From: Takakia lepidozioides
Lineage: Eukaryota; Plantae; Bryophyta
NCBI GenBank assembly: GCA_030704615.1
Contig: CM060732.1
Coordinates: 57,784,001 to 57,848,000 of the forward strand
Length of the DNA: 64,000 bases
Reading direction: 5' to 3'
A model generated the notes under the pieces. The model was not told where the DNA came from, searched no databases, and saw only the letters and a list, made by a program, of their open reading frames with translations. Made by a program: the position numbers and the translations under genes. Shown piece after piece: positions 4,447-49,090 of this stretch (its first letter is position 1; every line of letters begins with the position of its first letter).

Positions 4447-4449
4447 TTT

Positions 4450-4780
4450 CACGTGGAAAGAAGAGATTTGAAGAAGGAACAGAGTATGGAGATCGAAATG
4501 GGTGGATTGCTGCGAACAGTATTGCCGAAGCTTTAATGATGGGGCACAGCGATATGCAGCTTGGAAAGCGAGTGTGAAAGAAGGAACAGTGGAAAGCGAG
4601 TGCGAGGAGTGTAGCGAGGGCAGGGATATATACGCTTGTCAGCAGCCCAGCCTGGAGGGACACCTGTGGGGTCGGTGCCGGAATACGCAAGGTGTCACCC
4701 CCAAAGAGCTCCACTTGTCGATGTCCAGAACTTTCTGTACTCTATCCACTTCCTGCCACACGCACTACACCACGTGTCGC
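4450..4780 (-). promoter_or_regulatory. LEA promoter: TATA box with ABRE/G-box and DRE-like cores
   Basis: TATATA at ~4627-4632; CACGTG at 4450-4455; CACGTGTC at 4771-4778; GTCGGT (ACCGAC on the minus strand) at 4671-4676. These are typical of ABA/desiccation-induced LEA genes. Confidence 0.55.
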
Positions 4781-11847: not shown

Positions 11848-12453
11848 GGGCAAGCTCAACATGGCCAAGGATGCGGAGGTCAGGGTATTGACCAAGGCAT
11901 GGCTAGAGCAGAGGCTCACTGCCATGGCTACAGCTCAGGTGGTACTGGCTCCAAGGCCGGATGGTCCACCTCTTGCTCATGAGGGAGGAGATATGGGAGG
12001 CATGGGATTCATGTGCGGGGCAACACTACCACTAGTGCAAGTGGAGTCGGCGGCGGCAGTGACCCGAGGAGTAGCACGGGTTCCTGAGCCACGAGGTGCA
12101 GAGGTGGAGTTGGATCCACAACGTGGGGAGGCAAGCCGTCAGGCTAGGCTTCCTCAGTCATTCATATTGGCGGAGACAATGTCGACGCCATCCATGGCAC
12201 CTAGTTCGCGCCCGACTGTTATTGAGGCAGAGGTTATTATGCCATTGGGGAGAGCCACACGGGCAGCACCACTAACTAGTGTTGCCAAGGCTACAGCAGC
12301 TAGTGTGCTGCTGGGGGCGGCCACATCTGTGTGCCAGGCTCCATTGTTCTCAGCTACCATGATTGCGACGCCGGGGGTAAGACCAGCTGAGGTATTCAGG
12401 CTCGAGCTACACTCTATGAAAGTGGGGAGGTTACTTCATCTTCTGCGGAGATA

Positions 12454-13000
12454 GTGGGAGGTGTAGTGCCAGAGGGATCCTCGGATTTGAGGGTCAAGAC
12501 TGCCACGACGGCGCCATGGCAAGCTGCAGCTGCCAAGTTGATGGAACTGTCAGCTAGGCCAGCCATTGAGCGCACCATGGTGACACCTGGAGTTGTCATG
12601 TTAGACAACCAGGATGACATGTTCTGTTTGAGTGGACCGGTAGGCAAGAGGTACCGGCCACTGCGGGTCTTGTTGGATTTGGGGGCTCAACCATTGATGC
12701 TGGGCAGAGCTGCTATTGCAGACTTGGGCCTCACGGAGGCGGATATGGAGCCTTGTCCTTTCTAGATACAGACATCTCTGGGAAGATCAGAGCAAGCTCG
12801 GGGCATGACACGGCGTGAATTGGCTATCAGACTACGTCCGGATCACCCTACAGATGGCTCAGTGATGCGAGCCAAGGCCATTGTGACAGACGCGGTCTCG
12901 TACGATGTCCTAGTTGGTGGGGCAGTGTTGTACCCCATGGGCTTCACCCTAGATTTTTGGGAGGAGTCAGCTTCCTACAGGCCTGGATGGCAGTCAGGGG
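12454..13000 (+). pseudogene. Retroviral-type aspartic protease, degenerate
   Basis: RVLLD[L]GAQPLM (DSG to DLG, TCG>TTG) and the flap-following YDVLVGGAVL; in-frame TAG at 12763-12765. Confidence 0.75.
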
Positions 13001-13369
13001 AGGGCCGGCATGTGCAGCTCCCTATGACGTTCATAGGAGGAGTTGCGGTTGCCCAGCGGGGCAAGATGCCAACACTAGCAGCATTCACAGCTGCAGTGAC
13101 TTGGCCTGAAGAGTTGCTAGAGGGCAACACTCATTCAGAGGATGACACACCTCCAGGAGAGCAGGATGATATGTATGGTATGGTGGAGTTGCCTGCCATG
13201 GTTGCTTAGACTCCATTGTGGGGCACGAACAAAGATTTGCAGCGGGTGGCTGATCGACGACTGCAACAAGCCTGGGTAGAGGCTTTTGTACCATTAGGAG
13301 AGGAGGAGAGTGTGGGGATTGCACTAGGACCACCTCAGTTGTGTCCATTGGACACCACATCTATTGTGT

Positions 13370-14103
13370 GGCAGTATCCGGATGAAGGCATTTGCCTTCT
13401 GGACTTGTTTGGCGGGATCAACACCAGATTGGCTGCTGTGCTACAGGTAGGTGTAGGAGTTCGGCGTTACCCGTATGTGGAGAGGGATGAGACTGCACGA
13501 CGTGTTTCACTTCGCCATGTTGCTCAGTTGGTGCAGCAATACCCTGAGTTGTTGCCGGTGTCTGCAGTTCGTGGATATCAGCAGGCTTTGCCAGCAGACA
13601 TTTCGTTGCTGGGGGCGCAGGATTTGGAGCGGGTTGGCTCCATTGATCTGGTAGTGGCAGGTTGGTCCTGCCAAGGGCATTCATCAGCCAGACATGGCAA
13701 TGGATTGCGAGACTCAAGGTCGGGTCTGTTTTGGGAGATGGTGCGGGTTTTGAGCCACTTGCAGTTTCATCAAGCTGTATCTCCAGCATACATCTTGGAG
13801 AATGTGCCACTGATGGGCGATTCTCGGGCCAGGGTGATGGCCAGTGTGCATTAAGTCCGGTCGTGGCTTGGGTCAGCAGTGTTGCTAGATGTAGTTGCAG
13901 TGGGGTCACGGGCTCATCGTCCACGGCTATGGTGGACTAACTTGATGCCACCCGTGCTGCTCAAGAGTGCATTGAATGGGGTGCAGCGGCCAGCACACCT
14001 CACAGTGGATAGCATTTTGGACACAGGGAGGCAGTCTCAACGTGTGAGACACAATGACTGTTCGCCTTTGGCAGTGGTCAACAGGGTGGGTCAACCACGA
14101 GGG
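13370..14103 (+). pseudogene. DNA (cytosine-5)-methyltransferase domain within the retrotransposon pol, C-terminally truncated
   Basis: Motif I LLDLFGGI; motif II YVE; motif IV DLVVAGW[S]CQG; RSGLFWE; motif VI ILENV; motif VIII AHRPRLWWTN. One in-frame TAA at 13852-13854. Confidence 0.9.
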
Positions 14104-23668: not shown

Positions 23669-24720
23669 TTTTCACGTGGAAGGAAGAGATCTGAAGAAGG
23701 AACAGAGTATGGAGAGGATCGAAATGGGTGGATTGCTGCGAACAGTATTGCCGAAGCTTGAATGATGGGGCACAGCGATATGCAGCGTGGAAAGCGAGTG
23801 TGAAAGAAGAGATGTGAAGAAGGAACAGTGGAAAGCGAGTGCGAAGAGTGTAGCGAGGGCAGGGATATATACGCTTGTCAGCAGCCCAGCCTGGAGGGAC
23901 ACCTGTGGGGTCGGTGCCGGAATACGCAAGGTGTCACCCCCAAAGAGCTCCACTTGTCGACTACAGAACGTCCACTGCTCTATCCGCTTCCTGCCACCCG
24001 CATGACACCATCTGTCGATACTATCTTTATTTGTTTGTATTAATATTCATTTTCTATGCACTTTCCTACCTGCCCCCTTGAAGCGAGTCACACTGAGCCC
24101 TTTCACACTGCACCTATATATGTATTTTGGTTCCTTCATCAATTTGGTTCCTGATGACATGGCCGAATTGATCCATGCGAGTTGGATGATTTCTGCCACG
24201 TGTACAATTCTCTAAAAAAGGAGACTGCCGTAGATTTGTGCCATTATTGGCAAATTTTGTGTATAGACCATGGCACTCTCCTAAAATTCAGTGTCAAGAC
24301 AGATCAGGAAGCTGACTGTCCAGAAGATGTACTTAGCTGCCAAGGATCAACCCTCCAAGCATGAGACAATGCTGAGGGAAAACAATTGCCACCATCAGAA
24401 GCCCAAAAAGACCAATTCAAATAAACCTTGGATACTGGATGCTACCCCATCACTGCAGTGACAACATTTCTGAGAATTCCTCTTCAACACTCTGGTAAGT
24501 CCCTTGTTCACATTTGTGGGGGACACAACTTACCATCCCAGTAGTTTGGGCAGTTCCAACAACTTACAGACTGCATCGGTGAACAGAGACTGTGATGCCC
24601 GATCACTCTCTTCATGGCTACTGTTCCCTGCCCCTCTCTTTATGTCCATCTCCATGAGGTTTTCTATGACTTCTGATGCCGTTCAGAAATCTTCGGCCAT
24701 CACCATAGGCACCTCATAGA

Positions 24721-26996
24721 TTGTACTCATAAGACGTTGTTTGCCGTAGCGTTGTGGCCATTGACCCCGCGCCCAGTTTGAGCGGGAACAAAAGGGACAG
24801 AACCTACCTCTGTCAGGGGCTGACGTTGGTAGTAAGACTTACCTCCATATAAAGAACTAATCCGGGTTTTCCAGATATCCCCTAGAAATCCCTTCACACA
24901 AGCATCAATCTGCTGTGTGTGATTTGCCCAAAAACTAGGCCTGGGCCTGGAGGGCCTGGGCTTTTGGCTCAGCCTCGAGACTGTCAAAGTTGGTAAACAG
25001 GGGTACAGGCACAATTCCCTTAATAGATTTGAAGAGAGCGTCTCTTTGGTGAGAGAACCCCGGACAGTGTATCAGAAAATGAATACTGTCTTCAGATTGC
25101 CCACACAACGGGCAATTGCACTCTCCCTTTCCTCTCTGCTTCTGTTTGCTGTTCAAAGGTAGGCTTCCTGCCCTGAGTTTAAATTTCAGTCTAGTGCCGA
25201 GAGTGGGTAGACCCTTGAGGTCATCCAAGATGTCCTCCCCCATGTCACAGACTGGAAACAAGTTCAGGGAAGTTTTCTGCCTAACTTCATTTTCATCAGA
25301 CAATCTCATGGCAACAGACATGGCTGAGGACACTACAGCCTCTAAGTCAGATTTATCCAGCAGGGTCAAGACTTGCGGATCCAGGTCCAGGTCCTTGAGG
25401 ATCTCTTCTACTCTCTTCCGCCAGGACTTAGCCTGTTTGACAGGGCGGTCCTGTTACCAAGATCTAGAGTCGATTAACTTGAGATATCTGGTGTTGGGCA
25501 TATGTTGCAGCTGACCCCACCATCTGACCTTGAATTCATCTCGTCGGGAGCTTAAGGACGGAATGCCAAACTCACCCCGAACAGCCACATTGGCTGTTTT
25601 GGAGCATGCTGACATACACTCCTTAAGCACCCCCACTTGAATGGATTCTAGAGACTTAGCCTGGTTGGAGTTATCAACCCATATAGCAGATCCGTACTCC
25701 AAGGCAGGTCTAATAACGCGACAAAGCATGGTTTTCTTAACCTCAGAGTTGACCCCTCTGCAGTGGAAAAATTTAGTGAGCCCCAGAGCTTTGCCCTTGC
25801 CAGTTTGAACAACTTTCCGGATATGTGCATCCCAATTACAATTGGAGGAGAACTCAACGCCCAGGTAAGTGTAGGAAGGGAGGACCGGGATCTCTTGGCT
25901 ACCCCACGGCCACTTAAGATCACTTCCTCCCTCTCCTCTGTCGTTGAATGCTACCACTGCACATTTGCCGACATTAGCCTCTAGCCCCCAAAGATCTAAG
26001 TATCTCTTCGCGCAATCAATCAACTCCTGGAGATTGGTTGGAGTCTCCCCTATGCCTGCGAAGTCATCCGCAAACATAAGGGCTGGTATGGTGGTATCAC
26101 CCGCCCTTAACCCAAATCCCTCACTTTCCACATCCTCGAGGAGTTGATTGATGAAAACATTGAAGAGCAGAGGGGAGAGAGTACATCCTTGAGCTACACC
26201 TTGGTCTATGTCAAAGAAGTTGGACTTCTGTCCGTTAACAGTGACACAGCTTTTGGTGTGAGCATACAAGTTGTGGACAACTCTCCACATCTTTCCCTTG
26301 ATCCCACAAGACCAGAGGCGGAACCATAGGCCATCTCTCCACACTGTGTCATAAGCCTTTTTGACATCCAGGAAAAAGACATAAGTGGGTTTCCCTTCTT
26401 TTTTCCTTCCCTGGATAATCTGGCTTAGAGTGAAGATATGATCCACACAGCCCCTGTTTTGCCGAAAGCCAGCTTGGCCTTCGTGGAAACAACCTCTAGA
26501 CTCCAGATCAACCTCGAGACGAGTACTTATAACTCTGCAGAATGTCTTGCCAACAGCATTGAGGAGTGAGATGCCACGGTAGTTCCCTGGTTCTTCTCTG
26601 TCACCCTTCTTGTATAGATTGACAATGACCCCCCCTCGCCAGCGAAAGGGGATCATTTCAGTCTTCCAGATAAGGTTAAAGAGGAGAACTAGGGCCTCTA
26701 TCATGGGATCGCCACCGTGCTTGATAAGCTCGTTGACAATACCATCAGGTCCACCAGCTTTATATCCATTTAAATGTTCAATTGCTTCCACAATCTCAGA
26801 AGAACTAATGGGAGCATTATAAGCCATTGAAATATACTCCAGTTCATCAGGGCTGTTTTGAATCATAGGAACAGTTTTTCCAACTGTGTCCCTCCATTCA
26901 GCAGAAGACCCCTCACTGTTAGACCTAGAAGTTCTGCCAAGGATACTGTAGTGAGTTTCAAAGGTTTTGACAATGTCAACCGATGAAGTCACCACT
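24721..26996 (-). mobile_element. 5'-truncated LINE (RTE/RTE-X-like RT with C-terminal CCHC) with 12-bp TSD
   Basis: RT motifs KAGGPDG, NYRGISLL, QAGFR, FLDVKKAYD, QGCTLSPLLF, LMFADD and YTYLGV; CPLC..EDSIHFLIHC. TSD GCACCTCATAGA at 24709-24720 and 26997-27008. One internal stop at 25454. Confidence 0.93.
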
Positions 26997-27148
26997 GCAC
27001 CTCATAGAGACTGTAAACTAGTCTGCCGCATTCGTATCCTACTTGTTTCTTCCAATTCTAACCCCACTCTTCGAAAATAATCACAAAATATGACTCTTTC
27101 TGCCCTCGTGTGTGAGCGGTGCATTGTCTTTCATGGATGTCGCTTGTG

Positions 27149-30100
27149 TCACCAGTACTTCCCACAAGAACAAACCCCATCTTGGAAGTGGTGAAGCCGC
27201 TGCCATCCCTTAAAACACATGTTCGCCCAAGAAGTTTCAAGATGGACTTCATGGCAGTGTGGGAAATCACCACACACCCCAAGGTTCTTCATGCCCCCGG
27301 GGGGCATGCTGATCAGCCCAAAAACAATGGCCAGCTTCTCGCTGTGGTGGCGAAGAGAATTCCACTTCCTCCTCCCGAGTCAAGCAATACACAGCATTTG
27401 TCAGGCATGAACCCGGCCTCCTAAATCTGCTGGGGGACAATCTATTCAGCTTAGCATGGATATCCTTCATTTGAGGATGCAATTTGTCATCTGAAAGGAA
27501 AGTATACACTTGGTTGTGCACCTCAATACAGCGATGCCCTGGTTCCTATGTAACACCTCTCTCCAACATCATTTTTCTAACCTTTACTCTGTCATCCCAC
27601 CTGCCAGCAGCATCATAGATATTTGATAGCAGTACATATGATGCACTGTCCTGTGGATCCAACTTGAGAAGGCATTTTGCCACTCGTTCTGCCACCTCCA
27701 CATTGCCATGAATTCTGCAGGCACCAAGCAAGGCCCTCCACACTGCAACACCTGGTTCAATTGGCATTTTGTTAATTAACTCCTCTGCCTCGTTCAATTG
27801 GCCTGCACGGCCAAGAAGGTCCACCATGCAGCCAAAATGCTCAACCGTTGGAGTGAGGCCATGATCTCGACTCATGGAATCAAAGTAGTGACGGCCTTCA
27901 TCCACTAGGCCGACATGGCTACATGCAGAGAGAACACATATAAAGGTGATGCCATTTGGCTTCAAATCTTCCTGTTGCATTTGTTCAAATAGTTTCAGGG
28001 CCTCTCTACCACCACCGTGCTGAGCATATCCAGCAATCATTGCGCTCCATGAGACCACATTTTTCCCAGTCATATTGTTGAACAAATGATGTGCATCCAC
28101 AATGCTCCCGCACTTGGCATACATGTAAACAAGGGCATTCTCCATAAGGATATCAGGTGCAATTCTTGCTTTGATGATATCAGCATGGATCTCTCTGCCT
28201 TTTTCCAGGCCTGCCAGGCTGGAGCACGCACTAAGAACACAAATGAATGTGACACTGTCTGGCATCACGCCTTCTCGAATCATTTGTTTATAAATCTCAA
28301 AAGCCTCTTTACCACACCCTTGCTGAGCATATCCAGCTATGATTGTATTCCATGAGATGACATCCCGTTGGCCCATACTGTCAAATACTTGGCGTGCCTC
28401 CCTCATGTTCCCGCATTTGGCATACATGCCAGCAAGGGCAGTCTCCAGAATGATATCTGGCCCAATCCTAGCTTTGATTATCTTGGCATGGACCTCTTTG
28501 CCCTTTTCAAGAGCTGCCAAGCTGGAACATGCATTGAGAACACAAACAAATGTGACCTTGTCAGGTGTCACCCCCTCTCGAATCATTTGCTCATACATAT
28601 CGAAAGCCTCCATACCGTACCCATGCTGAGCATATCCTGTGATCATTACACTCCATGAGACAACAGTTCGTTGAGCCATACTGTTGAACAATTGACGTGC
28701 CTCATTTACCTCCCCGCATTTGGCATACATATCGACAAGAGTATTCTGCAGGACGATATCTGGCACTAGTCCAGCTCTGATGATGTCAGCATGGACCTGT
28801 TTACCCTTTTCCAGGGCTGCCAGGCTTGCACATGCATTGAGAACGGAAATGAATGTGATATTGTTGGGCATCACCCCCTCTAGAACCATTTGCTCATACA
28901 TTTTCCAAGCCTCCATACCATACCCATGCTGAGCATATCCTGCAATCATTGAACTCCATGAGATCACATCTTTTTCAGCCATACTGCTGAACATTTGTCG
29001 TGCATCGTCTAAACTCCCACATTTAGCATACATATGAACAAGGGCATTCTGCATCATAATATCTCGAACAATTCCAGCTTTTATGATATCAGCATGAACC
29101 ACTTTGCCCTTTTCCAGGGCTGCCAGGCTGGCACATGCATTGAGAACACAAATGAATGTAACCTTGTCAGGCTTCAGCCCCTCTTGAATCATTTGCTCAT
29201 AAATCTCGAAAGCATTCGTACCACACCCCAGTTTAGCATATCCTCCTATCATCGCATTCCATGAGAATACATTTCGTTGAGCCATACTATCGAATACTTG
29301 TTGTGCATTCTTCATGTTCCCGCCCTTGGCATACATGTCAACAAGAGCAGTCTCCAAGATGACATCGGGTGTCAGTCCAGCTTTGATGAAGTCACCATGG
29401 AGCTCTGTGCCCCTTCCCAGGTCTCCCAGGCTGGCACACGCATTGATAGCAGAAACAAACGAGACCTTGTCAGGTATCAACCCCTCTCGGATCATTTCAT
29501 CATAAACCTCAAGAGCCTCCCTAGCACAACCATGCTGAGCATATCCTGCAATCATTGAATTCCATGAGACAACATCTCGGTGACCCATATTGTCAAACAC
29601 TTGTCGTGCATCCTTCATATTCCCACATTTAGCATACATGACAGCAAGGGCAGTCTCCAGGACGATATCTGGACCGATTCCAGTTTTGATTATTTGAGCA
29701 TGGACCTCTCTCCCCTTTTCCAGTGCTCCTAGGCTGGCACATGCCTTGAGAACGGATATGAACATGACCTTGTCAGGGGTTACCCTTTCCTGTATCATTT
29801 GCTGATAGATATTCAAAGCTTCCTTACCATAACCATGCTTAGCATATCCTGAGGTCATTATAGTCCAGGTAAACACATCTCGTTCGGGCATTTTATCAAA
29901 CACTTGGCGTGCATCAGCCATGCTCCTGCACTTGGCATACATATTGAGAAGCAAGTTGAGTAGAGAGATGTGGGGGTACAATCCACTTTGGATTATGTGG
30001 GCATGCACCCGCTTTCCCATTTTAAGGTCTCCAAATTTCAGGCACTCCCGCAAGATAGAGACATAAGTATTGGAGTCTGCAGAGATGTCTTGTTTGTTCA

Positions 30101-30750
30101 AAATGTGCGCGGCTGCTTTCAGCTGTCCTGTCTTAAATGGCGTCCTGACATCCCCACAACTGCCACCGGTGTTGTTCTTGACTCCATCACCTCGACCTCG
30201 TATCATGGCAGCTAGTGCCGCTTGCACCAAAGGAGGCCGTGAACAACCCTCAATCCAAAGGGCCTGATTGGTGCGTTTATGTCTGAAATGTGGTGATCCT
30301 GGACTTTTCTGTGAAAAAAAGAACTGCACAGCTAAGCAACTATAGCTTCAACCACTATAACCACCAGAGCTCCAAGAGTTCTTCAAATGATAGACAATAA
30401 GAATCACTTCTGCTTACTGATGCAGACCAAAATAATCATTAGTGTAAGGAACAAGGCAACAATACAGTCCAACTAACATGATTGCGCAGCTTCAAGCACA
30501 ATCCCTCCTCCAAAAGGTACGCTCACCTTATGACATTTGTTGTCCCACCACTGCGAAGGATCTGAGAAGACCTGCCAGAGTGCTTGACCTGTGTTAAAAA
30601 ACTACCAAGACCATGAGTGTGCTCAACAAAATTTCCAGCTCCAAGTTAACCTGGATATTATTAGGAGCCTTCAAAAAAATTCTCTCAAATTCTCCCTCCC
30701 TTCTCTTATTGTACCTAAATCTACAGAGAAAGGTCTGTATAGCTTTCCAT
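27149..30750 (-). pseudogene. PLS-class PPR gene 1: long intact PPR-E ORF (30308-27546), decayed DYW domain behind a premature stop, disrupted exon 1 with PDF motif
   Basis: 101-aa P-L-S triplets (MYAKCG..DA..VF..M..RDVISW..MIAGYAQHG). Stop at GVT*EPG, then frameshifted HHSEKLAIVFGLIS...HHFQDGVCSCGKYW*. Intron 30526-30309. Confidence 0.88.
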
Positions 30751-30839: not shown

Positions 30840-31190
30840 AAATTGAGCTGGGACGGGCCAAGGAAAATATGGGGTCAGAATTGCTCGGCAGCAAAGAGTT
30901 AGAGACCCAGAAGGTGGTCAAAATTTCCAGGTCTATACCTGTCTCCATTGTCTCTGGAGTCAAAGCCCGCGCTTGCAAGGGTTTGGGGCCCGGCATTGCC
31001 AAGCTGGATATCCATTTCACCTCCACAACCTGGTGCCCTGCTACTCTGCAGTCGTACAGGCTTCCCACACGTTCACCCCAAAGAGAAGACGGTGACTGAC
31101 TTATGGCCTCCTCTCTCTGCCAGCTGAGGAGGCCGGTGGAGCGTGCTGCCATCGACGAGCCTTTGAGAGAAAGAAGCCACACTGGGAAGG
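30840..31190 (+). mobile_element. Decayed dispersed repeat (LINE-like), related to 32100-33500 and 37150-38540
   Basis: Shared translated motif (P/S)G(I/L)AKLD...LQ..RL and DNA ttgccaagct in all three. Confidence 0.45.
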
Positions 31191-31433
31191 TAATCAGAAC
31201 AGCAAAAAAAAAGCGAGAGCTCCTACAACTCCGATTGCAGTTGTAAGTATGGACTTCGTAGACAACCAGAGAAAAGTATTGGGCAATGATTGCCTGTGCA
31301 ACACCTCACATGAAGACTAAGAAACTAACAAAGAAACTGACCTTCCCTACACATAACTTTCAGTATCCGTGACTGAGCTTTTGAAGCGGAATTTTCTGAA
31401 TTGTGTTGTGAAATCAATGAAAACATCTGGCCC

Positions 31434-31859
31434 TCATTGTTTTGTGGGCAAAGAGCTCCTGAAAATCTCAACCCCCAAATAATCAACAACTCCTTCAACA
31501 GCTACATGCGGTTTGCCTATTTTGACACGAACGTCAGAGATCGCTGTATGCTTTCCTAGAATGTCGGAAGCAATCGAATTTGCCACAGACTCCAGCAACT
31601 GAAATGGAGGGCCTTCCACGATCCTTTTGACCTGCCTGTAGATCTCTCCATAGCTGACCGAGTCCTCAAGGCAATCAGTCTCCCCAGCTCTACGAAGGTC
31701 TAACCAGGCATCCACATCCACCACAAACTTCTGCCCTAATTTTCTTTCTTCTTCATAAACTCCGTGATATCCATGGAACTGCAACCCCCTCAAGACAAGC
31801 TTGTCTCTGTAGCTGGGTACCCTGCTTCCGCCAACTCCATCCTCAAAATGGCGAGACAT
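31434..31859 (-). CDS. FOLB: Dihydroneopterin aldolase (141 aa, single coding exon)
   Basis: DKLVLRGLQFHGYHGVYEEERKLGQKFVVD, SVSY, LLESVA and VKIGKPHVAVEGVVDYLGVEIFR match the plant FolB family. Confidence 0.95.
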   Translation of the reverse strand: MSRHFEDGVGGSRVPSYRDKLVLRGLQFHGYHGVYEEERKLGQKFVVDVDAWLDLRRAGETDCLEDSVSYGEIYRQVKRIVEGPPFQLLESVANSIASDILGKHTAISDVRVKIGKPHVAVEGVVDYLGVEIFRSSLPTKQ

Positions 31860-32099
31860 TTGAAATTCGAAACACCTTAAACCCACTTAAAACCCACTTT
31901 ATTCTTAGAATAGATCTGTCCTTTCACAAATAAATCGCCCTGATCCTTGGCTTTACAGACCCGAGCGAACGTCATACCTGTATGAAGGCAACTATCAGTG
32001 ACATCTCACAAATCGAGAAGAAAATGCAACCACTCACCTAGACTGTCAAGAGCTTAGACATACATACCACCACTGAAACACAAATTATCCGCAAAGCGC

Positions 32100-33500
32100 A
32101 TTGGCTGCTGAAACCATCTTCAAACTCCCAACATACCAAAGAGTACAGAGGAATCCCGGCTCGGCTCTGGAGACAAAACGATCAGGGAATACACTTCAAT
32201 ACAACAGGATAGGGCGGGTTTGGGAAGAGACCCGTTTGACCAGACGTTCTGGACGGGTTACGGGTCCACATGGAAAGAGGCCCTTTAATTGAATGCGCTG
32301 CCATTCTCCGACTCTTTAACCCCATCGTCTGATTACTTTCCAGAGAGAGTGACAACGAGAGAGAAATTCTTTGAATGGATTGAAGAACCAGCGAGGCCGG
32401 AATTCGGAGCGTGTGATACATTTACAGGTATCAAGTATCACCTGCCGAAGAATTTTGCCGTAGACAGGGCTGAGGCAAGAAGGCAGCAGAAGCATCAACC
32501 CGACACCACCATCGATGTAGGGAGACAGTGAAGTGCGCTGGCCCAAAGCGGCAATGCACCCTCAACAGCATAGTCTCTGACCAACACTCTTAGACCCCTG
32601 TTGTTCCTCTTTTCCTGCTGTCCGCTTCTCCTTGGCTCTGTCACTGGCGCGGGATGGCAGCACGCGCCGCCGCTCTCCTGAGTTCGCAGGGAGAGGCCAT
32701 ACCCCAAGCCCTGTCTTCTCCTGGCGATGTGCAGCCCGGAAGCCTCACGTCCTGCAGCAGATTAACGTGCGAGGCTGGGAAGCTCAAATGGATATCCAGC
32801 TTGGCAAGGCCGGACCCGAGATCCTCGCGGATGATGGCTATGACGCTTGCCCAGCCTCCATTGATATCCGAGAAAGGTATGAAATGGAAATCTTTGCTGA
32901 CTTTTCTGGGCTGTGGAAACTGCTCAATTGGTGCTCCATATTTTCCTTACCCATCCCAAGATAAACCCCTACCATGTTTGTCGAAAAAGTTCCCTCTCTG
33001 ATTGTACTCGGCACGCTAGAGCTCCTCCAGTATCTGCTGAAATATCTGAAAGTTTGTATTCTATCCATCATTGCATGTTTTTCCTGTGAAGCTCGATCCA
33101 TTTTATTACTGCCCAAAATTATTCGACAAGAGAGATTAGTCGCTATTTACATTGCTTGCTTGCGGATGCCAGTGTGGGGGAAATGTCAACAAGGTGAGAG
33201 AATGTTATGTTATTGCTACAGGTCCTCTGAAGCATTGCAAAGCGACAAGGCCAATTACGCTGAGAAGGAGGGGTAAGGGCAGAAAGAAGGGTTTACTCAT
33301 TGAACCCCTTGTTAACATTGGCCGTGACAGGCCCTTGCGATTAGAGGGAATAACAATCCTTCTGGAGCCTGTTGTGGGAGTCTATACCCTCCACTACTTA
33401 TAGAAACTCGGCAGATTAAAACATACTCCTGATTTCATCAAAGCTGCTCTGCCCCCAATCCGACTCGGATGTGACAAATGTTTCTTTGATGGCACTGGCT
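32100..33500 (-). mobile_element. Decayed LINE-like repeat, same family as 30840-31190
   Basis: Minus-strand GLAKLDIH...NLLQDVRL; boundaries approximate. Confidence 0.4.
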
Positions 33501-33602: not shown

Positions 33603-36600
33603 ATGTTGAAGTACCAGGGTTTCTGGATAGAGTCTGAGGAAATCCAAAGTTGGCAAAGTCCCCATGGTCTTGTAGTTCTTGCAAGCAGGTCAAGCAAAGA
33701 GCAACCAACAACTCTGGCAAGAGTTTTGTTCAGATCTTCACAGTGGTGGGACAGCAGGTTTGATAAGGTGACATCTTTTTTTCAACTGGATTGTATCTCC
33801 CATCCCTTAAAATTACTAGCAATTCTTCTCTAAAATTGGCAAAGTGGTCCTTACTCAAGCTATGAGTTGCTTGAAAACAGGGTGTTTAAGGTTGTTCCCT
33901 GCTGTGTTAGAGATGCTTGGAGATCTGGTGCGTGTAGCTATATGCCACTCTACTCAACTGCCTGCTGCTGGTTTTTGCAGAGAAGTACAAGATCACCAGA
34001 CTTCAGGCATATGCATACAAACGAGGCACTCCGGATTGAGGGTTGGTCGAACCCTCCTCGGATGAAAACAGTGCTAGCTGGCATGATAAGTCAAGCACAA
34101 TCTCGTGATGGAGTGGACAAGAACTCTTCTGGCACTTGCGGGGACTTCAGAACACTATGTAAGTCAGGACAAGTGAAGAAGGCACTGCACATTTTGACGA
34201 AACAGGGCATGTCCATAGACTACAATACTTATGTCTGTCTCTTGCGGGCGTGCATCGAAATTAAAGACCTTGAAGTGGGAAAGCAGGTGCACAAACACAT
34301 CATCCAAAGCAGATTGAATCCAAACAATTTTCTACTCAAAACCATCGTTAACATGTATACAAAATGTGGGAGAGTGCTGGATGCACGTCTAGTGTTTGAC
34401 AAAATGCCCGAACGAGATGTGTTCACGTGGACTACAATGATGGCAGGATATGCGAAGCATGGGAATGGTAGGGAGGCTTTGGAGATCTATCAGCAAATGA
34501 TACAGGAAGGGGTGACACCGGACAATGTCACACTCATCTGCATTCTCAAGGTTTGTGCCAGCCTAGGAGCCCTTGACAAGGGCAAAGAGATCCATGCTTA
34601 TATCAACAAATTTGGCATTGCACCAGATATCATACTGCAGACTGCTCTTGCTGCCATGTATTCAAAATGCGGGAGCATGAAGGATGCCCGTGAAGTCTTT
34701 AATAACATGGAACAACGAGATGTGGTTTCATGGAATGCAATGATTACAGGATATGCTCAGCATAGGTGTGGTAGGGAGGCTCTTGAGATATATGAGCAAA
34801 TGATTCAAGAAGGTGTGATGCCTGTCAAGGTCACATTCATTTGTGTTCTCAATGCTTGTGCCAGCCTAGGAAACCTGGCAAAGGGCAACAAGGTCCATGG
34901 TAACATCATTAAAGCTGGAATTGTGCCAGATATCATTTTGGAGACTGCTCTTGTTGACATGTATGCCAAGTGTGGGAGTGTATTGAAAGCACGGGAAATA
35001 TTTAACAACATGGCTGAGAAAGATGTTGTCTCATGGAGTGCGATGATCTCAGGATATGCCCAGCAAGGGTGTGGTAGGGAGGCCTTTGAGATTTATGAGC
35101 AAATGATGCAGCAAGGGGTGGCGCCTGACACAGTGACCTTCATTTGCCTTCTCAATGTGTGTGCCAGCATGGCAGATTTGGAAAAGGGAGAAAAGGTTCA
35201 TACTGGAATCATCAAAGCAGGAATTGGGCCGCATGTTGTCATGGAGAATTCTCTTCTCAACATGTATGCGAAATGTGGGAACATCATGGATGCACGTCAA
35301 TTGTTCAACAATATGGCTAAAAAGGATCTGTTCTCATGGTGCACGATGATTGCAGGATATGCTCAGCATGGATGTGGTAAGGAAGCTTTTGAGATTTATG
35401 AGCAAATGATTCGAGAGGGGGTGACACCCGACAGGGTCACATTTGTTTGCATTCTCAATGCCTGTGCCAGCTTGGCAATACTTGAAAAGGGCAAAGCGGC
35501 CCATGCTGATGTTGTCAAAGCCGGAATTGCACTGGATATCGTTATGGAGAACACCCTGGTCGACATGTATGCCAAATGTGGGAGCCTAAATGCTGCACGC
35601 CAAGTGTTTAACAATATGGCTGAAAGAGATGTGGTTTCATGGACCACGATGATTGCAGGATATGCTCATCATGGGTCTGGTATGGAGGTGTTTGAGATGT
35701 ATGAGCAAATGATACAGGAGGGGGTGATGCCTAACAAGGTCACATTCAGTTGTGTTCTCTATGCATGTGCAAGCCTGGCCGCGGTAGGAAAGGGGAAAGA
35801 GGTCCATGCTGAAATCATCAAAGCTGGAATCCCACTAGATAACATTCTGGAGACTGCCCTTGTTAACATGTATGCCAAATGTGGGAGTGTAATGGATGCA
35901 CGTCAACTCTTCAACGACATGACTGAGAAAGATGTGATTGCATGGACCACAATGATTGCAGGATATGCACAGCATGGGTGTGGCCGGGAGGCTCTGAAAT
36001 TGTTTGAACAAATGCAGCAGGAAGGCTTGAAGCCAAATGGTATCACTTTTGTTTGTGTTCTAGCTGCGTGTAGCCATGTGGGCCTAGTCAGTGAAGCCCT
36101 TCACTACTTTGATTCTATGAGTCGAGATCATGGCGTGACTCCTACAGTGGAGCATTATGGCTGCATGGTGGACCTCCTTGGCCGCGCAGGACGATTGTAT
36201 GAGGCAGAGGATTTAGTCAACAAAATGCCAATCAGACCAGGAGTTGCAGTGTGTAGGGCCTTGCTTGGTGCGTGCAGAGTTTATGCCAATGTGGATGTTG
36301 CAGAACGAGTAGGCAAACACCTTCTTAAGTGGCATCCGCAGGATGCAGCAACTTATGTGCTGCTATCAAACATCTATGCCGCTGCTGACAGGTGGAATGA
36401 CGCAGCAAAGGTTAGAAAAATGATGCAAGACACAGGCATCAGAAAGGAGCCAGGGTCTAGCTGTATTGAGGTGGATAACGTGGTGCATACATTTGTTGTA
36501 GGTGACAAACTGCACCCACAAACTGAGGAAATTCATGCTGAACTTCAGAGATTGTCTGGGCAAATGAAGGAGGTGGGATTCGTGCCTGACACTTTCAATG

Positions 36601-36857
36601 TGTCGCACCATCTGGAGGAGCAGCAAAAGGAAATTTCTCTTTGCCACCACAGTGAGAAGCTTGCAATTGCTTTTGGGCTGATCAGCACACCTCCTGGGTC
36701 GCCGATCCGTGTCATCAAGAACCTTCGTGTGTGTGATGACTGCCACACAGCCACCAAGTTTATCTCAAAGATTGTTGGACGAGCAGTTGTTGTACGGGAT
36801 GCCAACCGATTTCACCACTTTGAAGATGGTGCTTGTTCATGTGGGGATTACTGGTGA
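33603..36857 (+). CDS. PLS-class PPR-E-DYW RNA editing factor with N-terminal PDF-like motif; exons 33603-33767 and 33981-36857 (~1013 aa; start uncertain)
   Basis: Intact P-L-S array, E domain, PG box (KEPGSSCIEV), HSEKLA, KNLRVCDDCH and terminal CSCGDYW. A phase-0 GT-AG intron joins QWWDSRFDK to RSTRSPDFRH. Confidence 0.93.
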
Positions 36858-37149: not shown

Positions 37150-38540
37150 CCTTCACTGTTCCCTTGATGACAGTATAATCTTCTTGGATGGAGCATCCAG
37201 CAGATGGTAGCTGAGAGCGCCAGTGTAGGTAGGATCACTGGTGACTTCGATCAGAGTGTCAGTTTTTGCTGACTTGGCAATACAGTTAGGAAAGACGGCA
37301 TGCGCAGAGTGCACAGCCCAACACCACCTTGAAGCTCTCCAAGCAGCGTAGCCTCGGCGATCCTTTTTGAGCTCACTGTATGTGCTGCCACGGCTGCTCC
37401 ACTCTAACTCCTGAACCCAAATCTTTAGAGTTTTTCTCAGCAGGCATAAAGAAGTAAACTGAGGCACCAGGGGAAGAAGTTCGTGCATACTTGAGAACCA
37501 GAGAGCAGCAGCTGCAAGCAATTCTACCTATGAACCTCCTGCAGCATTCGACGAAAGGCCGCTGAGAGACAAACAGGAAATCAAAATGATGAACCCACCA
37601 CCATTGCGTCTTCGTCAAGTGCGCAGGCAGTTGTTCGCTCACACCAGCAGCACACAAACACTCCTTTTTAAAGCCCCTATAGTGAGCGATCGAGAACCTA
37701 AGGTATTCTACTCAATCGAGCGGTCGGGAAAAAGCTGTGGGTGACTAGCCGCTCTTCCAGTCCTGATGTTCATGTACTGTTAAGGTGCGCAGATGAGCAC
37801 TCTCGATCACTTCTCAATGAGGTCCTCACTTCCAACTGCACTCGGCTTGGTCCAAGCCAGCAGAAGGATTCTAGGTGGAACTCGGTATGCCTTGTTTTGT
37901 TGCTCTCTTCTTGCTTCCCGCTGCTTCTTTTGTGACAGACGCAGGGATTGCAGTGAACTCCCCCGGTCCAAAGACCATGTCTTCATCTTGCGGTAAACGT
38001 GCGAGAAGCCTCACATCTTGCAGCAGATTAATGGGTCAGGCTGTGGAGCCGAAATTATCGAGCTTGGCAAGCCCGGGTGTCAGACCAGCGCAAGGAATGG
38101 TTATGAATCCTGCCAAGCCTCCAGGGATAGCGGAAAAAGGTAACACACGTAAATCTCTTGCGCGCGGGGCTAGAGCCCTTTGGAAGGAATACACACCAAT
38201 TTTTCCTTGTGTTGAGAGCATGTCAAATAGGCTACAGAAATCCCAGGCAAGTTTCACGAGGTGTAAGCATGTAATACCTGGCAATTGCAGATGTACTCCT
38301 GACCCTTCCTGCGGAGATTTGCTGTGATGAATCCGTAATTCCCTTGGTATACCATTATGGAGTCAGTTGTGGGGTTTCTACTCACCTTGTATGAATTCAG
38401 CCCACAAGCACCAAGGTGCTTTTGCAAACCAGGAGACACAGGGAATTAAGTACTGATGTAATGGTTGGAATAGACATCATCGTAGAAAACGTTGCTGATT
38501 TCAGCTCTGCTGCTCTGGTCACGTGTGTGATTGCTCTGAC
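37150..38540 (-). mobile_element. Decayed LINE-like repeat, same family as 32100-33500
   Basis: Minus-strand PGLAKLDNF...INLLQDVRL; boundaries approximate. Confidence 0.4.
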
Positions 38541-38598: not shown

Positions 38599-41500
38599 AT
38601 GGAGAGCCTATGTGAGACTTCCTTTATAAGACTTGGGTCAATTTGGAACTGCTAAAAGTTTCACGTTTCAGCAGTAAGACTCCTAGTAGAAACTGGTGGG
38701 ATTGGAAGCTTTCAAGTTCTCATGGTCTTGCAGTCACTACAGGTCAAGTAAAGACTAAAGAACAACTCTGGCAGCTTCGCAATTATGGGATAACTGGTTT
38801 GATAAGGTGAGGCTATCCTCGTTTAAGACATGAGGACGGGTTGTAAGTGAAACCGACATGATGGTGCTTTGTGGACTGGATTGCATCTTCAGTCATTGAG
38901 TCAATGAAAAGTTTTCTTTTCAAGGCAAAAGAGCAGCAAAAGTGGTCCTTACTGTCGGTTGTTCAAGGTTGTTCTCAGTGGAAGATGCTTGGAGTTCTGG
39001 TGGCTGTACCCTGGTCTATGCAAGACGGGTCTAAGCTATGGCTGCTCAGCTGCACACATGGGGTTTTCACAAAAAAGTCCAAGATCACCAGACTTCAGAC
39101 ACAAGCACGATCAAGGGTTGGTCAAACCCTCCCTGGGTGAAATCAGTCGTGATACATCGTCGAGCACGATCTGGTGATGGAGTCAACGAGAACTCTTCTT
39201 GCACTGCTGGGGATGTGAGGAGACTATGTAAGACAGGACAACTGAAAGGGGCACTCAATATTTTGAAGAGACAAAGCATTGTGGCAGACACAGATACTTA
39301 CGTCTGTCTCCTACAGGAGTGCACCAAAATTAAAAACCTTGAATTGGGTAAGCAGGTTCATGCCCACATCATCCAAAGTGGATTCAATCCAAACAACTTT
39401 GTACTCAACACCCTTGTCAATATGTATGCCAAGTGTGGGAGTGTGGTGGATGCCCGGCTAGTGTTTGACAACATGCCTGAACGAAATGTGTTTACGCGTA
39501 CTATTATGATGACGGGATATGTGAAGTATGGGTTTGGTAGAGAGGCCTTGGAGATCTATCAGCAAATGATACGGGAAGGGGTGATACCTAACAGCATCAC
39601 ATTCATATGCGTTCTCAAGGCATGTGCCAGCCTAGGAGCCCTGGAAATGGGTAAAGAGGTCCACGCTAACATCATCAAAGCTGGAATTGCACCAGATACC
39701 ATTTTGGAGACTGCCCTTGCTGCCATGTATACCAAGTGTGGGAACATGAATGATGCTCGACGAGTGTTTGACAATATGGGTCAACGAGATGTGGTCTCAT
39801 GGAACATGATGATTGCAGGATATGGTCAGCACGGGTGTGGTTGTGAGGCTCTCAATGTTTATGAGCAAATGATTCAACAAGGAGTGATGCCTGACAAGGT
39901 CACGTTCATTTCTGTTCTCAATGCATGTGCAAGCCTAGGGGGCCTAGAAAATGGAGCCCTGGAAGCAGGCAGAAAGGTCCACGCCAACACAATTGAAGCT
40001 AAGATTGCACCAGATATCATCTTGGAGACTGCCCTTGTTGACATGTATGCCAAATGTGGTAGCTTGAAGGATGCGCAGCAAGTGTTCCACAAAATGGCTC
40101 AACGAAATGTGGTCTCATGGAATGTGCTGATCACAGGTTTTGCTCTGCAGGGGTATGGTAGGGAGGCTTTCAAGGTTTATGAGCAAATGCTTCAAGATGG
40201 GGTGAAGCCTGACAAGGTCACATTCATTTGTGTTCTCAATGTGTGTGCCAGCCTGGCAGCCCTAGAAAAGGGTAAAGAGTTCCATGCTCGGATCATGGAC
40301 TCTGGAATCCTGCCAGATATTATTCTGGAGACTGTCCTTGTTAACATGTATGCCAAATGCGGGAGCATAAGGGATGCACGTCAGATCTTCAACAGTATGG
40401 TTGACAAAGATGTGGTCGCATGGAGTGCAATGATCGCAGGATATGCTCAGCATGGGTATAGTATGGACGCTTTGGAGATGTATGACGAAATGGTACAGGA
40501 GGGGTTAAAGCCCAACAAGGTCACGTTCATTTCTGTTCTCAATGCGTGTGCCAACATGGCAGCGCTGGAAAAGGGCAAAGAGTTTCATGCTACCATCATC
40601 AAAGCTGGATTTGCAGCAGATATCATTCTGCAGAATACCCTTATTAACATGTATGCCAAATGCGGGAGCATAAATGATGCACGTCATCTGTTCAATAACA
40701 TGGCTGAAAAAAATTTGGTGTCATGGGCAGCCATGATCGCAGGATATGCTCAGCATGGGTATGCTGGGAAGGCTTTTGAGATATATCAGCAAATGGTTCG
40801 AGAAGGGTTTATGCCTGACAAAGTCACATTCATTTCCGTTCTCAGTGCATGTGCTAGCCTAGCCCTGGAAAAGGGTCAAGAGGTCCATGCTCACATTGTT
40901 AACTCTGGAATTGTGTCAGATGTCAGTCTGGAGACAGCCCTTGTTAACATGTATGCCAAATGCGGGAGCATGAAGGATGCACTTGTAGTGTTCAACAACA
41001 TGGCTGAAAAAGATGTGGTCTCGTGGAGTGCAATGATTGCAGGATATGCTCAGCATGGGTGCGGTAAGGAGGCTTTTGAAATGTATGAGCAAATGATACA
41101 GGAAGGGGTGAAGCCCAACAAGGTCACATCCATTTCCGCGCTGAATGCCTGTGCCAGCCTGGCAGTCTTGGAAAAGGGCAAAGAGGTCCACAGTGACATC
41201 ATCAAAGCGGGGATTGCTCTAGATATCATTGTTCAGAATACCCTTGTTGACATGTATTCTAAATGCGGCAGCATAAATGATGCACAACAAATGTTTGCAG
41301 ATATGGCTAAAAGAGATGTTGTCTCATGGAATGCAGTGATCGCAGGATGTGCTCAGAATGGGGGTGGTAAGAAGGCCTTGAAATTATTTGAACAGATGCA
41401 ACAGGAAGGCTTGAAACCAAATGGTATTACCTTTATATGCCTTCTCTCTGCGTGTAGCAATGTGGGCCTAGTGGATGAAGGCTGTCACTACTTTGATTCC

Positions 41501-41870
41501 ATGAGTCGAGATCATGGCCTTACTCCTTCAGTGGAGCATTATGGCTGCATGGTGAACCTTCTTGGCCGTGCAGGTCAATTGAACGAGGCAGAGGAGTTGA
41601 TCAACAAAATGCCAATCCAACCAGGCGCTACCGTGTGGAGGGCCTTGCTTGGTGCATGCAGAACTCATGGCAATGTGGAGATTGGAGAACGTGCGGCAAA
41701 CCACCTTCTCTAGTGGGATCCACAGGACACAGCAACTGATCATGTATTGCTATCAAATTTCTGAGGTGAAAAAACTTGAAAATTCATGCTCTGCCAAACA
41801 GATTGTCTGGGCAGATGAACAAGGCTCATTCAAGACCGGGGTCTGTTGTGGGGATCATTACCGGAATTCT
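38599..41870 (+). pseudogene. PLS-class PPR gene 3: 891-codon ORF truncated in the E region, DYW deleted, exon 1/PDF motif disrupted
   Basis: PLS repeats 39038-41713. Stop at NHLL*WDPQD, where paralogs read LLKWHP/LLKLDP. Remnant aattcatgct..cagattgtctgggcagatga. Acceptor changed CAG>CAA at ~39070-39072. Confidence 0.88.
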
Positions 41871-45490: not shown

Positions 45491-46667
45491 CCGCGCCCCG
45501 GATCGCCACATCCTGGATGTACGTATTCCACCAACCCGCCAGTTAGCTTCGGCTAATACATACTTCGTATACGATACAATGTAACTTAATGTAATAAAGT
45601 CAATAATAATTCCCGACTAATGGGAAGCGAGAACGAGGTGCTATCTCGCTGTGTCCCTTACATGTGTCAGAATTTCATTTGGTGAAATTAGGGGACGTGG
45701 ATCAGGATGTGGATCGGCGATGGGATTGGGGGCATGCAGTGGAGCCGGGAAGGGAGGGAGTTTGTGGGGTCCTCAGAGAGAGGGCCCAGAGCAGCAATGG
45801 CAGGAGAGAATGCCATGTCGCTGCCTCACGCTGTATGACCTTTGCAACTCTCTGCAGTGCGGTAAGTGTGAAGTTGAGGAAGCTGGGCTCCATAGCTGCG
45901 AAAATGCAGGGACTTGATAGCTTTGGCGGTGGGGTGTGGAGCTTTCCACTCACTCGCTCTTTGTTTCCGTTCTTCGCATTTCCCTATCTCTCTACTGAGT
46001 TTTCGGTTGCGGTCCAGTTGAATGGATGCCATAGCTTTGTTGGCTCCTGAAAGTAGATTCTTTGTGGTATTCTCGTGCTTCAGTTTTTAGCACGTGTTCA
46101 ACTCGTGCTGTCTTGTGTTCTGTTGGCACTCTTCCCTATGTCGTAGATGCCTTGTTTCTGTTGTGTTTGATGTTCTCCTCTCCTATGTTGGGAAGCTTGT
46201 CCAGTAGCTTACCAACAGATTCATGCCCAAGACAAGCCTTTTCAAAACTGTCTTTTTTTCATGCCTATTCTCGTCTCCTGGAGACCCAACATATTACACT
46301 ACTTCTCATACAAGGGACTTCACCTCACTACTCCATGTTACATTCTCGTTGTCGCGAATTTAATTTGCAGCAGAGAAAGATCTGACTTGCTGTTATGACT
46401 CAAATCTTCTCGACTTGAACTGCCTGAGAGTTCTGAAAAGTGTGCGTAGTGGGATGAGGAGAGCGTCGCAGCTACAGTCATGGCGATTGCAGGATGGGGT
46501 CATGTGTTCTGGTGTTGACAGGGACAAATGTTGTGGAGCTTGTTCTTCTCAATTCTGTGTGGGAGAGAGAATTGAACTGGAACTGTAACTGGAATTGTTG
46601 CAGCAGATGCGTTTAGGCCTCAAAACATAATTCAACGGGTTGTTGGGCTTTCTGAGATAAGAGAGAG

Positions 46668-49090
46668 ATGGCAGCCGCGAGGAGTGGGAACAGCAGCGTC
46701 GCCACAGCTATGGCGATTGCAGGAAGGGCAGCGAGCGCTTGTGATGTCTGTGGTCGTCAGAGAGCCCGCTGGTACTGCGCAGCTGATGAAGCCTATCTCT
46801 GTCAGAGATGTGATGGGAATGTCCACGGAGCTAACGCTCTCGCTCTCCGCCATGAACGAGTTCGATTAGGTCCTAATGGAGTTCCAATGAAGATGCCTAA
46901 TCGCTCGACCTCGGATCTCTCAAGTCATCTTTCAACACGAAGCATGAAAGGCGACAGAGTCCCAGACATCGGCGAAAATCCAAACCAAACACAGAGTCCA
47001 AACAACATTCTGCCCTCTAGAAAGCGGTCTCGAACTAGCCGACCTCATCCCCATTTAAGAGGGTCTAACTCACACTTGAGGTGTGCTGGCGGGGGCAGTC
47101 GTCCCCCTCACAAAATCCACAGAAGCAATGAGCTTCATGCGAAAGTAAAGGTTGAGCCGCAACAGAAAGAGGGAAAGAATGATGAGGGAGCCCATGAGGT
47201 GCCTGCATTCATCACGGTGAGTCAAGATTCCCAAGACCCCAATGTTTCTGCAGGTCACGGTGCAGGATTCTATGAAGAACACTCCACATCCGAGCACTCG
47301 TTCTCTGAGTACTTCAAAAGTAAGGCAGCAGCAGCCCCTGATGATATCAGCGATGACTCGGACCAGTTCCTTGTCCCTGATCATTACCTGGATTCTGGAG
47401 TGGATTTTTGTGGTGAGATCGAGGGAACCCTGGGTTCTCTGATGGGAGAGGCAGGGAATTTCACAGGTACAGAGATTCCAGGCGTAGATGGGTTTGGCGA
47501 GGTTGGTTATTGTGGGAGCAAAGATTTGACCGCCGAAGACTATGGACTGACTTTCTCAGACATGGTGGCTGAGAGGGGGGGGACTTCGGATGCATTCGAG
47601 GGAGATGGCTCCGAGGCAGGAGATAGGGGAAGGGTAGAGAGTGAGGGAACCTTTCCCAGATTCTTTCCAGGGAGGGTGAAAACCGAAACGTCATTGTGGT
47701 CTGCAGAGAAGATCAAGAAGGAGGCACAGGATATGTTACGGTGCTCTCTTAAAGGTCTCAGTCAGGAAGATCTAAGGCAAGTCCCATCTTTAAGACTGAA
47801 CTACGAGGATGTTTTAAGCGCCTGGTCAGATCGAAGCCTGTGGACAGATGGAAAGCGGCCCCAAACTGTCCCTGATGACTCCAATTCAGACACAGTGGTA
47901 AGTGAAAAGGTTTGTCAGTAGAGTTTGTGTTGAGATACATTGGTGTTTCTCTTAACAGCTTGAGAGAGACAGACAGGCCGACCTAGTAGCCAGTCCATCT
48001 TACAGCTCAGCTTAGACTTGAATGATGGAATCTACCGTAGTTGTGAGGGATGATTTCACTACCAAATAAACATAAGTGAGAATCTGCACACTTGCGCATG
48101 CAGGTTCTCTTTGGGTTAATGGAACTGGGGCTAAGTAATATTCTTGAACAGATAGCTGACCCATTACATAGCTGTAAAACTATGTCAAGATGTCAGCAGA
48201 GATGTGGAGCTGTTATTAGCAGTGAATGCATGTGAATACTCTGATGATTGACTTCCAGCAGACTATAAAGTGTTCACCATTACTAAACATAGGTAGAAAA
48301 TCTTGTCAAACTGTTTTGGGATGCTATGAGAAAAGTGCTGGTAGGTCGAGTGTGTCAGGATGAACTCTAAATTTGAGACTTCTTTTGTTCTGTGCAGGGA
48401 GGCTGCATGGATATAGGTCTGGTTCCAGACATATACAGTGGAAATCTAGGGTGTAATGAAGGAGGGCAACTGTCAGTCACTACCACAGGTGATGAAGGTT
48501 TCAATCCTGGAGGGGGAAGGGAGGCTCGCGTGTTGCGGTACAAGGAAAAGCGGCGCACACGCCTTTTCTCCAAGAAGATCCGGTATGAGGTGCGAAAGCT
48601 CAATGCAGAGCGGCGGCCACGCATGAAGGTCAGTTATCTAGTCCTTCCAGAAACAGAGAGAGCTGGGACCATGATTGTGCTGAAGTACCAGGTCCCTGAC
48701 CTTGTCTCAAACTAAGATGTATCTGTTCTACCTTACTCTCTGTGCTGTCTCTGTGCTGATCAATGCATTTCGTGCTTCCAAACTATGTCCTCGTCTGCTT
48801 TGTTTCTCATCTGTTTCTCAACAAGAAAAGAATTGAGTGTGTGATTTGGAACTTATGAAACTTAAACTAACTATCTACTTTAGCTCCTTGATACTTTAGA
48901 AGCAGCATGGTTTTTACCAGAGTCTTATGACTCACTAGACTCCACTAGACTCGGACTCCACTAGACTCATGACCTCCTCCCTCATGTCCTCTATTGTGTC
49001 CTCTCTGGCACAGAGTGTATGTTGCCTGAGAGTGCATATGATGTGTCTCTGCAGGGCCGATTTGTGAAGAGGACAGCTGCTGCCTCATGA
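46668..49090 (+). CDS. CONSTANS-like B-box/CCT protein (group III, single B-box; COL16/BBX15-like), 498 aa, exons 46668-47897, 48398-48628, 49055-49090
   Basis: B-box [40 protein letters not shown]; [13 protein letters not shown]; [40 protein letters not shown]|GRFVKR; phase-0 GT-AG introns. Confidence 0.95.

Follow-up and report, generated by a model that had tools for sequence, protein, structure and literature searches.

Three PPR paralogs of the PLS class in the nuclear DNA of the moss Takakia lepidozioides carry, ahead of their PPR arrays, a degenerate copy of the PDF motif of OSB proteins, and the fusion of this motif to PPR arrays is a real, old, and apparently undescribed domain combination. 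The three genes are shown to belong to an old family of seedless-plant organellar PLS-class PPR(-DYW) genes with an OSB-type PDF cassette as front end, in which a transit-peptide exon is followed by a phase-1 intron, the first half of the PDF motif, a phase-0 intron, and the second half of the motif. T. lepidozioides has ∼2,000 PPR genes (PMC13386178) and massive C-to-U editing (PMC10482289). An earlier, sequence-only reading had proposed the fusion and knew of no report of it, and the literature searched agrees: no paper on a fusion of PDF or OSB with PPR or DYW was found, with most subscription papers lying outside the coverage, and the main text of a 2026 kingdom-wide survey of editing-factor domain fusions (PMC13386178) includes neither OSB nor PDF. 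The fusion has been missed because no Pfam model matches the PDF motif and because an intron splits it.

The window, which is the whole 64-kb stretch of DNA analyzed, contains PPR1 on the reverse strand and PPR2 and PPR3 on the forward strand; a FolB gene separates PPR1 from PPR2 (Table 1). Each PPR gene has an upstream exon 1 that had been overlooked; it is open for 64 to 74 codons, is low in complexity and rich in Ser, Thr, Ala, and Leu, and ends with a phase-1 donor. Between PPR1 and PPR2 this exon has kept its frame with dN and dS both at 0.43, the pattern of a targeting peptide. Two acceptors are candidates for intron 1, of which the downstream one (CAG/GTCAAG) is common to all three genes and lies ∼20 to 24 nt after a branch-point-like CTCAT in PPR1 and PPR3. 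With this acceptor, PPR1 is continuous in frame from its ATG through the PDF motif and the array to E2 and a premature stop. In PPR2, it gives an exon start at 33689 and meets a 1-nt deletion at ∼33736 that shifts the frame; the upstream acceptor (exon start at 33676) leaves the frame open to the DYW stop and puts out-of-frame sequence in place of the first PDF helix. PPR3 is frameshifted with either acceptor. A start codon directly before exon 2 was considered and rejected, the ATG-like stretch lying within intron 1; this intron has stops, and contig coverage is absent except at its edges.

Table 1. Features of the three PPR genes (positions are those of the window)
Feature	Position	Strand	Description
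PPR1 exon 1	30939-31152	-	ATG and 71-codon transit-peptide-like leader, phase-1 donor
PPR1 exon 2	30527-30588	-	First PDF half, in frame; profile-HMM match
PPR1 intron within PDF motif	30309-30526	-	218 nt, GT..AG, phase 0
PPR1 exon 3	27546-30308	-	Second PDF half, PLS array, E1/E2, premature stop; 920 open codons
PPR1 E+/DYW remnant	27149-27545	-	Decayed, frameshifted
PPR2 exon 1	32654-32876	+	ATG and 74-codon transit-peptide-like leader, phase-1 donor; homologue of the first exons of PPR1 and PPR3
PPR2 exon 2	33689-33767	+	First PDF half, 1-nt deletion at ∼33736
PPR2 intron within PDF motif	33768-33980	+	213 nt, GT..AG, phase 0
PPR2 second PDF half	33981-34079	+	Degenerate: two conserved Trp to Arg, Lys to Met
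PPR2 linker, PLS array, E1/E2, E+, DYW	34080-36857	+	Pfam matches; code pairs; matches to solved DYW structures
PPR3 exon 1 homologue	37947-38139	+	ATG to ATT, frame open, phase-1 donor
PPR3 exon 2	38743-38806	+	First PDF half, frameshifting deletion
PPR3 intron homologue	38807-39072	+	266 nt; acceptor AG to AA
PPR3 ORF	39038-41713	+	Frameshifted remnant of second PDF half, intact PLS array, stop in E1, no DYW

The coordinates and translations first given for the spliced motif of PPR1 (30580-30527 joined to 30308-30210, a second half in which the residues PDF are changed to PHF) and for the PPR2 junction (33767/33981) are exact. The phase-0 intron said to split the motif in all three paralogs stands in PPR1 and PPR2, both with GT..AG ends, and falls in PPR3, where the homologous sequence ends in AA; the spliced PPR3 motif as it had been read crosses two frameshifts.

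Profile and protein searches were run exon by exon, never on joined sequence, and all scores refer to half motifs. A first HMM, built from 96 PDF motifs of non-PPR proteins only, was run against the six-frame translation of the window (3,620 unjoined segments). Its top five matches are the five scorable exon halves (11 to 22.5 bits), which fill the complementary profile positions 4-25 and 24-55, and the maximum in the reversed window is 7.0 bits. Because this motif set had been found using the window sequence, the profile was rebuilt independently of it from 27 metagenome OSB and phage motifs; the second HMM scores four exon halves at 28.7, 20.3, 18.8, and 17.7 bits and the frameshifted first half of PPR2 at just 6.5 bits. 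The second half of PPR1 alone, searched against 1.84 billion proteins, has 30 matches, of which ∼25 are PDF-repeat proteins, and the annotated OSB3 of Chenopodium and of Amborella are among the 30. A PDF motif of ∼50 aa is present and degenerate in all three copies, and is best in PPR1. Its assignment to OSB proteins, made at first from the letters, is supported by these non-PPR profiles, by the shared intron, and by the predicted fold, and on the strength of the HMM controls and the shared intron we reject a Trp-rich sequence of chance or convergent origin. Searches of a word index with the half motif of PPR2 and with a Ceratodon PDF returned nothing new and are uninformative on the spread of the fusion.

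The intron shows common descent. In a Kingdonia OSB-like gene and in a second angiosperm OSB gene, almost all PDF repeats have a phase-0 intron at the corresponding codon, after the WWDNRxxK element, and these genes usually have a phase-1 intron a few codons ahead of the first Trp. Ceratodon KC19_9G185500 and a second moss gene (on metagenome contig L024) have the phase-0 intron at the same codon, so that OSB and PDF-PPR genes share it; one Sinapis OSB has intronless PDFs, and the intron is common, not universal. Structure prediction, which had been proposed as a check, agrees: as modeled by AlphaFold (pLDDT 89), the motif matches an OSB cluster of the ESM Atlas with a TM score of 0.93 and three Atlas PPR clusters (127, 63, and 57 members) with TM scores of 0.90, 0.82, and 0.87. 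The nearest Atlas feature matches of PPR2 exon 3 are clusters with the size and length of the 63- and 57-member PPR clusters; the same search with the motif alone was blank, and the PDB has no sequence or structural match for the PDF fold (best Z score, 3.0).

The window PPRs resemble OSB1-4 and pTAC9 in PDF sequence, in predicted fold, in having a phase-0 intron in the motif and a phase-1 intron just before it, and in their N-terminal targeting-like leader. However, OSB1-4 and pTAC9 combine an SSB-like OB fold with one to three PDF motifs, whereas the window PPRs have a single N-terminal PDF, which lacks invariant residues, followed by a PLS array and E/E+/DYW domains. No Pfam match to an SSB/OB-fold domain, which is seen in the OSB matches, occurs in the long ORFs of the window PPRs; they are therefore not OSB members and only share the PDF module. 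The fusion would have arisen when a PPR-DYW body without introns came to lie behind the 5′ exons of an OSB-like or PDF-only gene. Genes rich in PDF repeats are candidate donors of the cassette, and such proteins without PPR motifs include P0018 (Welwitschia), P0036 (Ceratopteris), P0029, P0019, P0011, P0015, P0022, and P0024. P0019 has no Pfam match, and some of the PDF-rich proteins resemble transcripts of non-plant eukaryotes.

Intact PDF-PLS-E-DYW fusions exist outside the window and are under purifying selection. Ceratodon purpureus KC19_9G185500/M758_9G182100 codes for an intact transit-PDF-PLS-E-DYW protein, although it is not annotated as such, and its PDF is predicted to fold apart from the PPR array, with ∼58 disordered residues between them. 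It shares its domain order and first two introns with the window copies, but it is fully intact and has an extra intron in the linker, whereas each window copy is broken in the PDF or the DYW. Between the Ceratodon and L024 genes, the PDF has a dN of 0.15 and a dS of 1.09 (dN/dS of ∼0.14, from one moss pair and 55 codons), and the PPR block of the same single pair has a dN of 0.26 and a dS of 0.77 (192 codons); in this one moss pair, the fused PDF is under purifying selection tighter than that on the PPR block. One transcript contig has three intact PDFs before a PLS array.

The arrays of all three window genes are regular P-L-S triplets with motifs of 35/35/31 residues, ending in P2-L2-S2. 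Canonical code residues occupy 13/14 of the P and S motifs in PPR1, 9/12 in PPR2, and 9/12 in PPR3, in the last of which two motifs are misregistered by indels. PPR2 has E1/E2 and E+ motifs and an intact DYW domain by Pfam, with HxE, CxxC, and a C-terminal DYW; the region matches solved DYW structures and is, by its sequence, a standard C-to-U-type catalytic domain. PPR1 has a stop after E2 and then a frameshifted DYW remnant with a stop, and PPR3 has a stop in E1 and no DYW. By sequence, PPR2 thus qualifies as a PPR-DYW editor if its frame is continuous, and PPR1 and PPR3 do not. To call all three PPR-DYW factors fused to a PDF overstated the locus, because an intact PDF and a DYW domain do not occur together in any of the three genes; only PPR2 has a DYW domain, and the window codes for no intact PDF-PLS-E-DYW protein. 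PPR2 shares PLS triplets, code residues, E1/E2, E+, and DYW with PLS-class PPR-DYW editors such as Physcomitrium PPR56, but the fusions differ from these editors by an extra folded N-terminal PDF on a disordered linker, coded in separate exons.

Erosion in the window is concentrated in the PDF. The ∼171 PDF codons contain four lesions that break the frame or a splice site, against none in the ∼2,590 linker and array codons (P of ∼1.5e-5, or ∼2e-4 in a rough recount with two 3′ stops), and the arrays of the window copies have pN/pS values of 0.04 to 0.41 on each branch. The view that the motif is ancestral to the family and eroding in these copies is upheld, and the shedding of the module while the arrays were kept argues that it is accessory. 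The lesion pattern hints that PPR2 bypasses its lesion by using the upstream acceptor at 33676. PPR2 may be an editor with a crippled PDF made with that acceptor, a recent transcribed pseudogene, or the product of an assembly error at ∼33736. PPR1 is an expressed PDF-PLS-E gene that has the best PDF of the three and a dead DYW; it is transcribed and retains ∼1,010 open codons on which purifying selection acts, and with its E+/DYW dead it would need a deaminase in trans or have a non-editing role. PPR3 is a decaying copy whose acceptor, ATG, and DYW are gone. At this locus, module and deaminase have been lost independently.

This pattern bears on the earlier suggestion that the deaminase might be directed to ssDNA, which fits poorly with the ordinary code residues, the standard C-to-U type of the DYW, and the loss of the module from genes that kept their arrays. 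It is very improbable that the intact PDF-PPR-DYW members are ssDNA-anchored programmed deaminases at R-loops, able to deaminate the DNA strand itself and not just nascent RNA, and improbable in the extreme that the PDF and the PPR array together place the DYW domain on organellar ssDNA so that cytidines in DNA are deaminated. Some properties of the parts are compatible with the latter, since the PDF is the ssDNA-binding module of AtOSB1 and is sufficient for this binding (PMC6963530), and designer P-type PPRs bind ssDNA by the same code as RNA (PMC12733224). The array and the DYW domain are nevertheless of the ordinary C-to-U type, a heritable DNA edit would make the factor unnecessary, DYW activity on DNA was not found in the papers searched, and the independent loss of PDF and DYW at this locus also weighs against DNA deamination.

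Transcription of the front end is supported by two contig sets, presumed to be RNA, that were aligned to the window at 80% likeness. Identical contigs cover PPR1 and PPR2 exons and have zero depth in the bins within intron 1, as expected for spliced RNA. A 100%-identical PPR1 contig departs from the genome exactly at 30308 and continues for 41 further letters; a 99%-identical PPR2 contig (32040-32874) departs at the exon-1 donor with 29 further letters; and a 100%-identical PPR2 contig starts at 33979 with a single unmatched base, as expected of the spliced form. We infer the joints of PPR1 and PPR2 themselves from these departure points, neither being among the 15 joints listed. The motif is covered by dozens of paralog contigs, and a joint 30538 -> 33979 (4 and 3 contigs) shows paralog contigs linking a first-half exon to a second-half exon. 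For the 33767/33981 junction, on which an RNA check had been proposed, these contigs show the joining of the two halves in paralogs, and for PPR2 itself the junction is probable from its contig ends. At the positions where PPR2 deviates, the majority letters of the paralogs give the consensus Lys and Trp (38 and 37 contigs), and at the PPR1 deviations they give the consensus Trp and Glu; the family as expressed is therefore intact, and the lesions are private to the window copies. A non-coding remnant was rejected for the family as a whole by the selection and by the consensus residues in expressed paralogs.

These paralogs also bear on whether the PDF is a mere passenger. In that case a retroposed PPR-DYW gene would have acquired promoter and transit-peptide exons from an OSB-like gene with the PDF in tow, and the PDF would persist solely because it belongs to the import leader or forms a stable folded cap, its spread being due to expansion of the subfamily. 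In favor of this, the PPR body has no introns while the OSB-like front end ahead of it does, the PPR expansion of early land plants is linked to retroposition (PMC13386178), each local copy has eroded the motif and kept the array, and several moss PPR-DYW homologues have no PDF. We nonetheless consider it distinctly unlikely, because in the moss pair purifying selection is stronger on the PDF than on the PPR repeats, whereas between PPR1 and PPR2 the transit exon evolves neutrally, because expressed paralogs retain the consensus residues, and because one transcript has its three PDFs intact ahead of the array.

The earlier idea of a tether to nucleoids or R-loops is plausible. With about an even chance, by analogy with OSB proteins, the PDF anchors the editor non-specifically to single strands and so raises its concentration at nucleoids and nascent transcripts. 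After import, the PDF would fold independently on its flexible linker and bind single-stranded nucleic acid of any sequence, with ssDNA preferred as in OSB, keeping the protein at nucleoids and transcription bubbles, while the PPR array would find its RNA target through the ordinary code and the DYW domain would convert C to U. The PDF would be an aid to efficiency and not needed for editing, so that many paralogs would retain such an accessory and others would lose it. Because OSB2 forms a tetramer and several PDF motifs are present in many OSBs, a single PDF may bind weakly, which speaks against an anchor. Also counting against it, the intron position is not universal and all local copies tolerate the loss of invariant residues. 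In line with a dispensable PDF, moss PPR56 edits in Escherichia coli with just 14 residues before its first repeat (PMC10482289).

The PDF could instead be a built-in RNA helper without any DNA role, binding and opening ssRNA beside the target or contacting other editing proteins, and thus doing in cis what MORF and ORRM proteins of seed plants do in trans. This is unlikely, but it has points in its favor: moss editing factors are hampered by RNA structure and profit from native upstream sequence (PMC10482289), RRM-PPR and MORF-PPR fusions exist (PMC13386178), and the linker would allow the PDF access to RNA upstream of the array. AtOSB1/2, however, prefer ssDNA over dsDNA or RNA (PMC4166229), the phage context of the PDF is DNA replication, and the fused motif retains the OSB consensus without divergence. 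The window genes are like the RRM-PPR and MORF-PPR fusions in joining an accessory domain to PPR motifs, but the PDF comes from DNA-maintenance machinery and not from known editing cofactors. If the PDF is an anchor, it would be a direct physical link between organellar genome maintenance, through OSB, and RNA editing; would offer a clean deletion test of the coupling of nucleoids to editing; might explain how seedless plants edit many sites with few trans-acting helpers; and would supply a small natural part with which synthetic PPR editors could be tuned. The value of this locus is mainly in showing that module and deaminase are lost independently, and intact relatives are better subjects for experiments.

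PDF motifs are also found at the C terminus of small phage-like proteins (L025:605-1150, L026:3644-4177, L036:277-834, L089:2311-3123, and two Atlas rows), which contradict the statement in a review (PMC4166229) that PDF motifs are confined to green plants. In L025, L026, and L089, the PDF gene lies between genes for a PD-(D/E)XK nuclease and a DnaB helicase, the latter followed by an AEP primase in L089. This position usually holds an SSB gene. The sequences suggest a possible phage SSB-like origin of the PDF motif, and by analogy the gene context would fit an old ssDNA-binding role.

Several other features of the window are of note, and none of its 64 kb has an Rfam match. An RVT_1 reverse-transcriptase ORF (25457-27001, reverse strand) lies directly downstream of the decayed DYW remnant of PPR1. 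A retrotransposon with a weak gag match is present at 10474-14103 (forward strand), within which an ORF at 11525-12451 has no Pfam match, and one short translated stretch occurs at both 4394-4741 and 23675-24046 (reverse strand), and is therefore a dispersed repeat or a local duplication. FolB, coding for a dihydroneopterin aldolase on the reverse strand, is head to head with PPR2 (31373-32874); because FolB contigs end at 31978 and PPR2 contigs begin at 32040, the two genes may share a bidirectional promoter, and PPR2 may have a 5′ leader of ∼600 nt. A B-box zinc-finger gene, CONSTANS-like by appearance, is located at 46656-47918 on the forward strand.
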